DNA of 44,852 nt, from the NCBI GenBank assembly GCA_002269645.1, contig NIVC01004471.1, forward strand, positions 1 through 44,852, in the 5' to 3' direction. The translations under genes and the position numbers were made by a program. Source of the stretch: Macrostomum lignano. Taxonomy: Eukaryota. The first letter of the stretch is position 1. Each line of letters opens with the position of its first letter. A model generated the notes under the pieces. That model worked only from the letters and a program-made list of their open reading frames with translations. It was not told the DNA's origin and made no database searches. Below, piece by piece: positions 4,717 to 9,725 of this stretch.

Positions 4717-7700
4717 ATGCTGCCGTTCTTGCTGCTTCTCTGCTTGACAACCAATGCCATTGCCATTCCAAGAATACTTATTGACACAATAACCGAGGCC
4801 AGCCCACCGATTGACAATAGGGCTTGCCGAGTTCGGCTCGCCATCGCTTACAACGGGTCTCGACTGGATCTCAGCAATGAGACTATTGGTAAGGAGTCTT
4901 GTCCATGCATCCTCATCATTACCCCCTCAGTATCATTCCCCCTCAGTATCATTCCCCTTCAGTATCATTTGCCCTCAGTATCATTCCCTCTCAGTATCAT
5001 CCCCCCCTCAGTATCATTCCCCCTCAGTATCATTCCCCTTCAGTATCATCCCCCCTCACTATCATTCCCCCTCAGTATCATCCCCCCCTCAGTATCATTC
5101 CCCTTCAGTATCATCCCCCCTCACTATCATTCCCCCTCAGTATCATCCCCCCCCCCCTCAGTATCATTCCCCCTCAGTATCATTCCCCCTCAGTATCATT
5201 CCCCCTCAGTATCATTCCCCTTCAGTATCATCCCCCCCTCAGTATCATCCCCCCTCAGTATCATTCCCTCCTCAGTATCATTCCTTCTCAGTATCATCCC
5301 TCCTCAGTATCATTCCCTCCTCAGTATCATTCCCCCTCAATACCATTCCCCCTCAGTATAATCCCCCCTCAGTATCATCTCCCCTCATTATAATTCCCCC
5401 TCAGTATCATTCCCCCTCATTATAATCCCCCCTCAGTATCATTCCCCCTCATGATAATTCCCCCTCAGTATCATTCCCCTCATTATAATTCCCCCTCAGT
5501 ATCATTCCCCCCATTATAATTCCCCCTCAACATCATCCCCCTCATTATAATTCCCCCTCAGTATCATTCCCCCTCATTATAATTCCCCCTCAACATCATT
5601 CCCCCTCATTATAATTTCCCCTCGGTATCATTCCCCCTCAGTTTCAGCAATGCAGTTCATTTCCAAATTAGCTCCTTGTGAAACTTTCAGGCGGAGGCAC
5701 TGTGTATTTTCAGTTCGCAAGCCAGAAAGGACTGTACAGGTTTAATACGACAGTCAGGCTTAGCATTCTAGCGACGAGCTCAATTTCTGGAGACGCCAAT
5801 CTCATCGAAGTTGGCGGCTGCGATGCCGGGCTGAATTTGGGAAACTGGAATTGCTCCATCAGCAATGGATCGGCAGCAACAGTTGGGCTGCTCAAATACC
5901 GGGTGCAAGGTACTTGAGGACAATCACGATATATATCAGTTGTACATGATTCTAAATACTAGAAACCGACTTTCTTAATGGCTTTTACAGATGTTAATTA
6001 CAAACTGACGGTGTTGAAGTCTGTCAGCCTCTGCACCAACATCAGTGCAGAATCCAGCTTGTCCTTTCAACTGCTAGTGTTCCATCAGTTGTCGGGTGTC
6101 CTGCACTCAAGCAGAAAGGTTAACAGCACCCGTAAGTAGTAGTAGTAGTAGTAGTAGTAGTAGTAGTAGTAGTAGTAGTAGTAGTAGTAGTAGTAGTAGT
6201 AGTAGTAGTAGTAGTAGTAGTAGTAGTAGTAGTAGTAGTAGTAGTAGTAGTAGTAGTAGTAGTAGTAGTAGTAGTAGTAGTAGTAGTAGTAGTAGTAGTA
6301 GTAGTAGTAGTAGTAGTAGTAGTAGTAGTAGTAGTAGTAGTAGTAGTAGTAGTAGTAGTAGTAGTAGTAGTAGTAGTAGTAGTAGTAGTAGTAGTACGCT
6401 TTCATCTCAGCTTCATCTGCAGCCTCATCACTGGAGCAAGCCTACGACATGCAGCTGCCTTATTTGGTGGCTCTGGACGACCTGATCTTGTCGATGACGG
6501 TGCCGACTGGAGCGGCCTCAGGGCTGGGGTGCAGCCCGGTGTACAATGACACCTGGCATCCGGGACTGGGTTCCGGCTGGTGCAACTTGGTGACTTCGCC
6601 TCCGTCGAACTTGACGCCGCAGCCGAAGCTGCTGTACAGTGTCACTAGTAAGCGCTTGGTCCTGCTCTACCTTTACTTACCTGTCAATAAAAAATCTCTA
6701 CAACTCCATTAACTGATACCCCCGATCTCAGAGCTCGATTCCGCCAGAATGTACTTTATCGCGGTCAGATCTGTCGAGCAGCTGCTCACCACCAACCTGT
6801 CGCTCACCGATCCGTTTGTCACGCTGCATCAGCTGAGACCGGATGGATCCGTCGTGGACTCCGAAATTGACAGGTCACCTGTGATTTATGGTCAGTGTAG
6901 CAAGCACTTATTTGAATTCCTAATAATAGCACAGCGAGATGCTTCGCAACAAAGGAGAGCCAATTGCAAACTGCAGACAGTCTGGATGCAGCGTTCAACT
7001 ACACCTTCAAGGCCTCCTTCGCCAATGGCAGTCGAGTTCGCCTGATCGTCTGGGACGACGATTCGGGGCTCGAGCCCGACCGGCTGCAGCTGCTGGCCTG
7101 CGATTTCACCGTGCGGCTGGCAGCTGGCAGCTGGTGCAGCCCTCCCGCTGGTAGCGGCCGGCTCTGCGTGTCTGTTGCGAACATTGGTGAGATTGGTGAT
7201 TGGCTAAAGAATCGTTTCAGCTGATAGTGAATCGTTGCCCTTTTTTAAAGCCGCAGCATCAATTCTCACGCTTCATAATATGATCACCATTATCACTATC
7301 ACATTATCACTATTACCATCATCACTATCGCCATCGTCACTATCACTATCACCATTATCACTATCGCTATCATCACTATCGCCATCGTCACTATCAAATT
7401 ATCACTATCACCACCACCATTATCATCATCATCATCATCATCATCATCATCATCATCATCAGCATCATCATCATCATCATCACCATCATCATCATCACCA
7501 TCGTGATTAACTGGTTTCACCTGGCAGAGTCCGGCCTGCTCAGTGTCACGCTGCTGTCGGTGTCACAGCTGGCTCAGACTGACGCCGGCCCGCCGCCCCT
7601 TCTGTTTGTATCGGCGCGCTACCCAACCTGCAGCAGTGTGGAGTCCTCGCCTTCGCAGGCCATCGGTGAGTTTGTGAGGGGTGTACAGCTGCTCAAGCTT

Positions 7701-9725
7701 TCTCACTGTCAGGCAGTTTCGTGCGCTCTGTACTTTTATTGGAGATCGGTTGTTTCATCTTGTTTATTTTATTGATGTATATGTGCTGTTTTTATGGTTC
7801 TGTCTGCTTTAATGTGTTTCTGTCTGTTTTCATGTGTCTTTTTTTATTCTGTTCCTTACTGTTAAATTCTGTTTTATTATCTTTAATTCTGGTTAAGTTT
7901 GCTTAATTGTCTTTGCTTTTGCTTATTTCTGTTTCATTCTGTGGTTACTGTTTTTTACTGTTCCATTCTGATTCCTCCTGTTTCCCAGTCTCACTCCCAG
8001 TCTCGCTCCCAGTCTCACTCCCAGTCTCACTCCCAGTCTCACTCCCAGTCTCACTCCCAGTCTCACTCCCAATCTCACTCCCAGTCTCACTCCCAGTCTC
8101 ACTTCCAGTCTCACTCCCAATCTCACTCCCAGTCTCGCTCCCAGTCTCACTCCCAGTCTCACTCCCAGTCTCACTCCCAGTCTCACTCCCAATCTCACTC
8201 CCAGTCTCGCTCCCAGTCTCACTCCCAGTCTCACTCCCAGTCTCACTCCCAATCTCACTTCCAGTCTCACTCCCAATCTCACTCCCAGTCTCACTCCCAG
8301 TCTCACTTCCAGTCTCACTCCCAATCTCACTCCCAGTCTCACTCCCAGTCTCACTTCCAGTCTCACTCCCAATCTCACTCCCAGTCTCGCTCCCAGTCTC
8401 ACTCCCAGTCTCACTCCCAGTCTCACTCCCAGTCTCACTCCCAATCTCACTCCCAGTCTCGCTCCCAGTCTCACTCCCAGTCTCACTCCCAGTCTCACTC
8501 CCAGTCTCACTCCCAATCTCACTCCCAGTCTCGCTCCCAGTCTCACTCTCAGTCTCACTCCCAATCTCACTCTCAGTCTCACTCCCAGTCTCGCTCCCAG
8601 TCTCACTCCCAATCTCACTCCCAGTCTCGCTCCCAGTCTCACTCCCAGTCTCACTCCCAGTCTCACTCCCAGTCTCGCTCCCAGTCTCACTCTCAGTCTC
8701 ACTCCCAATCTCACTCTCAGTCTCACTCCCAGTCTCACTCCCAATCTCACTCCCAGTCTCGCTCCCAATCTCACTCCCAGTCTCACTCCCAGTCTCACTC
8801 CCAGTCTCACTCCCAGTCTCACTCCTAGTCTCACTCTCAGTCTCACTCTCAGTCTTACTCCCAGTCTCACTTCCAGTCTCACTCCAAGTCTCACTCCCAG
8901 TCTCACTCCCAGTCTCACTTCCAGTCTCACTCCCAATCTCACTCCCAGTCTCGCTCCCAGTCTCACTCCCAGTCTCACTCCCAGTCTCACTCCCAGTCTC
9001 ACTCCCAATCTCACTCCCAGTCTCGCTCCCAGTCTCACTCCCAGTCTCACTCCCAGTCTCACTCCCAGTCTCACTCCCAATCTCACTCCCAGTCTCGCTC
9101 CCAGTCTCACTCTCAGTCTCACTCCCAATCTCACTCTCAGTCTCACTCCCAGTCTCGCTCCCAGTCTCACTCCCAATCTCACTCCCAGTCTCGCTCCCAG
9201 TCTCACTCCCAGTCTCACTCCCAATCTCACTCCCAGTCTCGCTCCCAGTCTCACTCTCAGTCTCACTCCCAATCTCACTCTCAGTCTCACTCCCAGTCTC
9301 ACTCCCAATCTCACTCCCAGTCTCGCTCCCAATCTCACTCCCAGTCTCACTCCCAGTCTCACTCCCAGTCTCACTCCCAGTCTCACTCCTAGTCTCACTC
9401 TCAGTCTCACTCTCAGTCTTACTCCCAGTCTCACTTCCAGTCTCACTCCAAGTCTCACTCCCAGTCTCACTCCCAGTCTAGCTCCCTGAATTCACTGAAT
9501 CGCTTTCGCCTTCCCGCAGACTTAGGCAAGCGCCTGGCCCACTGGGGTCACCCATTCAGCAATTTAGTTCGGTCTGGAACTTCAGTGCAGCTGCAGGTGC
9601 AGTCAGCTACTGGCAGCAGTCAGCAGCTGGGCACCGCGGTGCATCTGGTGGACTCCGTAGGGCGCTTCGCCTATGCACTTGGCGGCCAGCTCAAGGGTCG
9701 CTTGTGCATCAGCGTGACTAGTTAG
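4717..9725 (+). CDS. Orphan secreted glycoprotein with four tandem C2-like domains (about 493 aa, 8 exons)
   Basis: Exons 4717-4888, 5691-5909, 5991-6131, 6411-6647, 6732-6890, 6977-7186, 7528-7665, 9520-9725. All introns are GT-AG and phase 1, giving a continuous frame to TAG at 9723-9725. Signal peptide MLPFLLLLCLTTNAIA; 12 N-x-S/T sequons. Repeat 3 has clear C2 motifs (TDPFV, SPVIYDSLDAAFNYTF, LIVWDDDSGLEPD, GRLCVSV). Confidence 0.85.
4915..5643 (+). repeat. About 16-17-bp minisatellite (ATCATTCCCCCTCAGT) filling intron 1 of the C2 gene
   Basis: Tandem units visible; they explain the spurious PQYHSPSV and SIIPP ORFs. Confidence 0.95.
6132..6395 (+). repeat. (AGT)n microsatellite, about 88 units
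   Basis: Starts at the splice donor gtaagtagtag; explains the poly-S and poly-Y ORFs. Confidence 0.98.
7290..7503 (+). repeat. ATCACT-rich and (CAT/CAC)n microsatellite in an intron
   Basis: Directly visible; explains the poly-H and poly-D ORFs. Confidence 0.9.
7983..9478 (+). repeat. 12-bp minisatellite (CCCAGTCTCACT), about 125 copies, with a 564-bp higher-order duplication
   Basis: A block of rare variants (actcctagtc...cttactccc...ctccaagtc) recurs at 8821 and 9385, an offset of 564 = 47 x 12. Confidence 0.95.

Follow-up and report, generated by a model that had tools for sequence, protein, structure and literature searches.

Contig NIVC01004471.1 of the flatworm Macrostomum lignano (GCA_002269645.1, Mlig_3_7), which in its entire length of 44,852 bp constitutes the window analysed here, carries at positions 4717-9725 of its forward strand (+) eight exons that, when the sequence is spliced, rebuild a single reading frame of 489 amino acids (aa). 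With evenly balanced confidence, the locus is interpreted below as a lineage-restricted M. lignano gene for a secreted glycoprotein made of four tandem C2-derived modules, which would be missing from the current annotation. That the gene is functional appears fairly likely, given the quality of its splice sites, its frame-specific codon usage, its enrichment in N-glycosylation sequons and the C2 ligands, cysteine pairs and tryptophans that it has kept.

The exons are arranged in four pairs, each encoding one module. Exon 1 (4717-4888, 172 nucleotides (nt)) opens with the ATG at 4717, which is preceded 24 nt upstream by an in-frame TAA; it encodes the predicted signal and the first half of module 1 and stops at the donor TTG/GTAAGG. 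The second half of this module lies in exon 2 (5691-5909), with C101...W110-x-C112 and the last strand GLLKYRVQ. Module 2 is divided between exon 3 (5991-6131), where the sequon TN147IS occupies the position of C2 loop 1, and exon 4 (6423-6647), which is identical in a second genomic copy of the locus and provides C214...W230-C231 and the last strand PKLLYSVT. Exon 5 (6732-6890) begins module 3 with the strand MYFIAVRSVEQL and a loop 1 holding N274 (sequon NLS) and D279 (in TDPFV), while exon 6 (6977-7186) completes it with VRLIVW331-D332-D-D334-SGLEP-D340 (the acidic cluster of loop 3), C347...W358-C359 and the last strand GRLCVSVANI. Module 4 begins in exon 7 (7528-7665; LLSVTLLSVSQLAQTDAG), its first half resembling strand beta2 and loop 1 of the C2B domain of synaptotagmin-1 (Syt1); the second half, in exon 8 (9520-9725), ends with the strand GRLCISVTS and the stop codon TAG (9723-9725). 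The arrangement proposed in a first-pass annotation of this DNA, eight exons in four pairs with all introns in phase 1, was reproduced exactly from the sequence, and the four strands that it had placed at the pair ends (GLLKYRVQ, PKLLYSVT, GRLCVSVA and GRLCISVT) are all found there. Its codon ranges per pair (46-57 + 68-79) hold for the exon lengths observed (57/73, 47/75, 53/70 and 46/68 codons), except that the upper value of 79 is too high, the largest exon having 75 codons.

All seven introns are in phase 1 and exons 2 to 7 are multiples of 3 in length. Every donor starts with GT (GTAAGG, GTACTT, GTAAGT, GTAAGC, GTCAGT, GTGAGA and GTGAGT, in order) and the seven acceptors are CAG. Retention of any one of the introns introduces an in-frame stop, meaning that the frame is open only if spliced as modelled. 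Four introns contain repetitive tracts: a minisatellite at 4915-5646 in intron 1 (a 16-mer repeated ~45 times), a microsatellite at 6135-6396 in intron 3 ((AGT) x 87, which reads TAG in the coding frame), an ATC/ATCACT-rich tract of low complexity at 7270-7505 in intron 6, and a second minisatellite at 7983-9479 in intron 7 (the 12-mer TCCCAGTCTCAC, ~125 times). The idea that the tandem arrays could be coding linkers was ruled out by the in-frame stops present in each retained intron. No further modules or paralogues were detected by tblastn in the window, nor in the 1.1 kb that separate the stop codon from the next gene. The stop TAG itself lies within a donor-like GTTAGT (window 9713-9728), in the same phase as the donor of exon 4 (GTCACTA/GTAAGC versus GTGACTA/GTTAGT), and this site looks like a relic of the splice donor of the duplicated unit.

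The product looks secretory, to judge from an N-terminal hydrophobic segment with an A-x-A motif, a threefold enrichment in sequons and paired cysteines. A signal peptide is predicted at aa 1-16 (4717-4764), with the sequence MLPFLLLLCLTTNAIA/IP around the cleavage point and small residues at -3 and -1 (A-x-A). The N-terminus is the most hydrophobic part of the protein and provides its sole 19-residue Kyte-Doolittle window above 1.6, which bears out the earlier proposal of a signal peptide without transmembrane segments, as no internal or C-terminal hydrophobic segment accompanies it. The 12 N-x-S/T sequons previously counted were all found, against 3.9 +/- 1.7 in composition shuffles, and none of 5000 shuffles reached 12; this enrichment is an argument for a frame shaped as a secretory glycoprotein. 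Also in agreement with the first-pass annotation, a Pfam scan gave no MACPF match up to E=10, and no Pfam domain other than the C2 match described below.

Coding status and the second genomic copy

In log-odds of codon usage trained on the adjacent exons of an M13 peptidase gene and of an ENPP-type gene, the modelled frame ranked first of the six frames in each of the eight exons, with a total of +74 bits, flanks and introns being mostly negative. A second copy of the locus, on contig NIVC01001104.1, preserves the open reading frame together with its 14 splice sites. Of the 1470 coding positions, 12 distinguish the copies; 8 of these substitutions are nonsynonymous and 4 synonymous, and the eight resulting amino-acid differences spare all Cys, Trp and Ca2+-ligand residues. 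Four introns differ in length between this contig and the second copy: intron 1 (4889-5690) measures 802 and 1804 nt, respectively, intron 3 (6132-6422) 291 and 159 nt, intron 6 (7187-7527) 341 and 937 nt, and intron 7 (7666-9519) 1854 and 870 nt. Changing two- to threefold in length with splice sites unchanged, the intronic arrays behave as fast-evolving minisatellites.

The results that weigh against the interpretation given at the outset concern selection, transcripts and relatives, dealt with here, and the nature of the individual modules, dealt with in the next section. The ratio of nonsynonymous to synonymous substitution rates (dN/dS) between the copies is 0.68, not different from 1, and conservation in the exons does not exceed that in the short introns. 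The exact protein of either copy is absent from ~15 billion proteins, among which no similar protein was found either; the full protein has no match at E<=0.01 among 5.8 billion clusters; module 3 alone gave 67 word-sharing candidates, none at E<=10; and of 102 pattern matches in metagenome contigs none was confirmed. Finally, on neither contig does the Mlig_3_7 annotation place a gene within the 10 kb preceding the M13 peptidase gene, so that the locus has no transcript support; this annotation was built from RNA-seq assemblies, novel transcripts below 0.5 RPKM (reads per kilobase per million mapped reads) having been discarded (PMC5730564).

These observations could also be explained by a reading frame that does not work as a gene: a silent relic, whether recently decayed or never expressed, or else an exon chain that was over-fitted, and that happens to be open in both copies. 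Such an explanation also draws on an exon divergence between copies 16-fold above that of unique flanking DNA and on the unstable tandem arrays that swell four of the seven introns. It is nevertheless considered improbable. Eight exons that are open only with exact GT...CAG splicing, all in one phase, and whose codon usage fits the modelled frame without exception, speak against it, as do the threefold sequon enrichment, the maintenance of C2 ligand residues, Cys pairs and Trp, and the absence of these residues from the amino-acid differences between copies. As for the dN/dS value, 12 substitutions are too few to tell neutrality from moderate constraint, and the two cannot be distinguished on this basis.

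The divergence between the copies has the form of an island, extending over window positions 4233-10732 and positions 3020-10000 of the sequence taken from NIVC01001104.1 (L001). In unique flanking DNA the two contigs are almost identical (~0.05% divergence): the 3000 nt compared upstream contain 1 mismatch, and the 3500 nt that span the whole peptidase gene contain 2, the M13 peptidase gene itself (2770 nt) differing at 1 position. Inside the locus, exons are 0.8% diverged (Fisher p=1e-7 versus the flanks), the 5' flank ~4% and the 3' flank ~1%. Possible causes of the island are mutation or gene conversion associated with the minisatellites, mosaic homogenisation in a neopolyploid genome, or the maintenance of two divergent forms of a secreted protein.

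Relatives were also sought by an exhaustive HMMER profile search, in which the four second-half exons served as the profile against 1.84 billion representatives. Of the five matches obtained, the four scanned with Pfam were giant bacterial repeat proteins of the Ig-like, SWM and PKD types and the fifth resembles the first by eye; all were rejected as compositional. Sequence searches of the PDB by phmmer and by profile, with module 3, the whole protein or the four-repeat profile, returned chance matches only (catalase-peroxidase, Rab3), perforin and SmC2P1, a fish C2-only protein, not being matched. As a side observation, a weak profile made of four beta-strand-rich half-domains gathers giant bacterial Ig-like repeat proteins with E values down to 4e-7, because many weak repeat matches are summed, which calls for caution in profile searches with repeat queries.

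Module 3 and the origin of its companions

The C2 fold is an eight-stranded antiparallel beta-sandwich, and classical Ca2+-binding C2 domains carry five acidic (Asp) ligands in loops 1 and 3. Module 3 (aa 253-375) matches the Pfam C2 family (PF00168) with E=0.0024 and 18.5 bits (15.7 bits with the whole protein). In Smith-Waterman comparisons with reference C2 domains whose identity was first verified with Pfam or the PDB, it gave z=6.7-7.0 with the C2 domain of PKC-alpha over ~100 aligned residues, z=5.7 with that of perforin over 35 residues, and z=4.4-5.4 with Syt1 C2A and C2B over ~90 residues, scores that were matched by at most 1 in 1000 shuffles. Against a profile of eight validated C2 domains it reached 17.6 bits, the best of 1000 shuffles reaching 5.7. 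On these sequence comparisons module 3 is a real C2 domain, as already proposed for the third exon pair, its Pfam score of 18.5 bits lying under the gathering cut-off of 22 and being the first of the adverse results on the modules.

The putative Ca2+ ligands of module 3 (N274, D279, D332, D334 and D340) align with D187, D193, D246, D248 and D254 of PKC-alpha. The same residues map to D429, D435, D483, D485 and D491 of perforin, which have a role in Ca2+ binding (PMC10400287). Four of the five positions are thus acidic, the first being Asn274, within an N-L-S sequon. This sequon stands on the putative Ca2+- and membrane-binding face, and a sequon recurs at the same position in module 2, which is a second adverse point: a glycan at Asn274 would hinder perforin-like docking onto membranes. 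Moreover, where perforin has the membrane-inserting aromatic residues W427, Y430, Y486 and W488 (PMC10400287), module 3 has T/L, S and L. Both the non-conserved aromatics and the loop 1 sequon, which may place a glycan on this face, count against a perforin-like mode of membrane insertion.

The remaining modules are far less clear. Modules 1, 2 and 4 have no Pfam match up to E=10, and the acidic ligand cluster is absent from all three. Modules 1 and 2 do not score significantly against the eight-domain C2 profile (p ~0.1-0.2), and hhalign found no match between modules 1+2+4 and the eight C2 domains. With all four modules the hhalign result was E=0.063 with a probability below 1%, and profiles built from modules 1+2+4 fail to recognise the C2 domains of perforin, SmC2P1, Syt1 or PKC-alpha. 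For module 4 the C2 signal is suggestive: the module gives p ~0.015 against the eight-domain profile, and its first 20 residues (SGLLSVTLLSVSQLAQTDAG) give p=0.018 against beta2-loop 1 of Syt1 C2B, a value that falls to p=0.003 once the strand before them is added. The earlier description of four C2-like domains therefore stands for module 3 and is only suggestive for module 4 (p ~0.003-0.018), whereas neither Pfam nor the eight-domain profile nor hhalign supports it for modules 1 and 2.

It could be argued, from this lack of signal, that the gene is real and contains a C2 domain in module 3 alone, perhaps also in module 4, with modules 1 and 2 being Ser/Thr/Leu-rich glycosylated regions, beta-structured or disordered, of separate origin and with exon sizes that coincide by chance. 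Smith-Waterman comparisons between the repeats, which are mostly not significant except for the last strand of modules 3 and 4 and count as a further adverse result, agree with this possibility, as does the failure of the first halves in leave-one-out profile tests. Against it stands the organisation of the gene. The two-exon unit with phase-1 borders and alternating exon sizes, which the first-pass annotation had discerned, recurs four times, and the intron within the module falls at an equivalent place in modules 2 and 3, directly 5' of S-L-x-x-A-[FY]. These two modules also have the motifs TN[IL]S, which includes the sequon, and HQL in common, as read from their sequences. Modules 1 to 3 each contain a W-x(0,1)-C motif (at W110, W230 and W358), placed 17-22 aa from the module end (P=0.002 in shuffles), and another Cys 8-15 residues upstream of the Trp. 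In a MAFFT alignment the resulting pairs, C101/C112, C214/C231 and C347/C359, share their columns with both Cys of mouse perforin and both of SmC2P1, the pair of perforin-type C2 domains being located on the two strands that follow loop 3. In perforin these are C496 and C509 (mouse precursor numbering), presumably paired with each other; PKC-alpha has no Cys in the two columns and module 4 lacks the Cys pair. In leave-one-out profiles the second halves of modules 1, 3 and 4 reached p ~0.015 and that of module 2 p ~0.15, a result that is marginal overall. A common origin of all four modules is accordingly judged probable on these shared features, short of demonstration, and the derivation of modules 1 and 2 from a separate source unlikely.

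A related issue is where each module begins. The last strand of the modules, G-x-L-x-[YVI]-[SR]-V, is also reminiscent of beta1 in type I C2 domains, for which Syt1 offers the examples GKLQYSL and GDICFSL. With type I phasing the same protein would consist of three full C2 domains (aa ~122-240, 244-362 and 365-476), preceded by an incomplete N-terminal module and followed by an orphan C-terminal strand. In favour of this phasing, GRLCVSVANI together with the start of module 4 aligns with beta1-beta2-loop 1 of Syt1 C2B with a score of 42, equalled by 14 of 5000 shuffles; the alignment of PKLLYSVT plus module 3 with Syt1 C2A reaches back to beta1 (KLQYSL); and the linkers past the shared strand have just 3-6 residues. 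However, the addition of beta1 to module 3 brings a small gain in score (43 to 45; 45 to 46), and the type I arrangement is viewed as unlikely. Type II topology, with the shared strand last in each module, is probably the correct one, because the unit that was duplicated, with its phase-1 borders, closes with this strand, because the protein ends but does not begin with it, so that type II phasing yields four complete units, and because the perforin C2 region has a similar strand (GRVKFSY) near its end, directly after the second Cys.

Relation to known C2 proteins

The first-pass annotation did not recognise the architecture of this protein, a statement that proved overstated. A closer precedent than perforin, which it had cited as the classic extracellular case, is provided by the c2PRF1 genes of teleosts, which encode a signal peptide and a perforin-like C2 domain only, with no MACPF (PMC7574235). 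SmC2P1, which is close to perforin C2 and whose structures are available (PDB 3W56 and 3W57), looks like a protein of the same kind as c2PRF1, its membership in that family being unconfirmed. Like both of them, the flatworm protein joins a predicted secretory signal directly to C2-type sequence and lacks MACPF and any further domain; it also has a Cys pair in the same two alignment columns and, in module 3, the acidic cluster of loop 3. Yet c2PRF1 has one C2 domain, clearly derived from fish perforin-1, whereas four modules occur here in a protostome; three of these four modules have lost the Ca2+ ligands, and no family relationship is detectable at the sequence level. As far as could be found, the fourfold tandem form in a protostome is undescribed.

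Perforin-1 itself (PDB 3NSJ and 4Y1S) provides an extracellular or lumenal C2 domain with which several features align, including the motif VWDxDxG...D..L.(G/A)CD and the next Cys, the last strand G-R-h-K/C-h-S-h, and the equivalents of D435, D483, D485 and D491 in module 3. In contrast to perforin-1, the flatworm protein has no MACPF or EGF domain, and the D429 equivalent is Asn274 in its sequon. In addition, module 3 is no nearer to perforin (z 5.7 over 35 residues) than to PKC-alpha (z 6.7-7.0 over ~100 residues).

Several C2 modules in tandem are also found in synaptotagmins, ferlins, extended synaptotagmins (E-Syts) and MCTPs, and in some tandem-C2 proteins certain copies are devoid of Ca2+ ligands. 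These proteins are cytosolic, either membrane-anchored or peripheral, and have no cleavable signal, whereas the flatworm protein has an N-terminal signal-like segment, a threefold excess of sequons, Cys pairs and no transmembrane segment. None of the four groups was among the matches of the homologue searches. No test applied here placed the protein in the perforin, c2PRF1, synaptotagmin or ferlin family.

Neighbouring genes, proposed mode of action and significance

The next gene, 1 kb downstream on the same strand (10733-13502, +), encodes a neprilysin-like M13 metallopeptidase in two exons, its product being 100% identical to the annotated hypothetical protein BOX15_Mlig021095g1 of M. lignano, which bears out the flatworm origin assumed in the first-pass annotation. 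A Logan-derived protein (P0002) is 80% identical to this peptidase; its likely source is either a related species of Macrostomum or a paralogue that the annotation lacks. Further along lie a large annotated Ig/I-set gene on the reverse strand (14083-23502, -), with minisatellite-filled introns, exons of an ENPP-type phosphodiesterase (PF01663; 36347-38119, +), and Kelch-repeat exons (38836-39189 and 29094-29492, both -). Upstream, a fragment of an LTR-retrotransposon (LTR, long terminal repeat) RNase H domain (762-1100, +) is followed by a separate I-set exon (1603-1977, +) that runs into a 28-mer array (1847-2387), of which there is an apparent reverse-complement counterpart at 37105-37497. 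A 23-mer (GGATTGGG..CGATTC..CAGG) makes up two other arrays, at 15555-16132 and 27646-29229. A scan of the window with Rfam gave no match.

In the model proposed for the C2-related gene, the 489-aa product would enter the secretory pathway by means of its cleavable N-terminal signal, cut after A16, and would be N-glycosylated at many of the 12 sequons. The mature protein would be a chain of four beta-rich modules of ~115-125 aa each, generated by tandem duplication of the two-exon phase-1/phase-1 unit and folded as beta-sandwiches stabilised by disulfides; the Cys pairs of modules 1-3 fit an oxidising extracellular environment. Since module 3 keeps D279, D332, D334 and D340, with Asn274 in place of the first ligand, it would be the sole likely Ca2+ binder of the four, and bound Ca2+ might conceivably let it dock on an anionic extracellular surface, be it a lipid membrane or an acidic glycan. 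Modules 1, 2 and 4, having lost the acidic cluster, would probably act as glycosylated spacers. The roles suggested in the first-pass annotation (membrane targeting, immunity, toxin delivery, adhesive or mucus secretion) are conjectural.

A bolder proposal, considered very unlikely, is that the gene represents a so far unseen class of extracellular multi-C2 proteins, that is, an invertebrate counterpart of the perforin-type targeting module mediating Ca2+-dependent docking on foreign or partner cells (e.g., in immunity, mating or adhesion), with two unusually divergent haplotypes or copies maintained by diversifying selection. Such selection would explain why the divergence island is confined to the gene.

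Orphan secreted proteins are common in flatworm genomes. This fact, together with the lack of expression evidence and of relatives and the existence of known secreted C2-only proteins, limits the importance of the finding, which is best described as an orphan gene, credible though not verified, that contains one real C2 domain of the extracellular type. Its immediate consequence is to flag a gene missing from the annotation of M. lignano, a transgenic model species in which in situ hybridisation and RNA interference are feasible. To our knowledge, C2 domains, which normally bind membranes, are confined almost entirely to the cell interior, with perforin and its fish derivatives as exceptions. 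If the interpretation is correct, the C2 fold would have been recruited to the extracellular space independently in protostomes, and the locus would offer a clean case of a protein that grew module by module as a two-exon unit with phase-1 borders was duplicated, the Ca2+ site being lost progressively.

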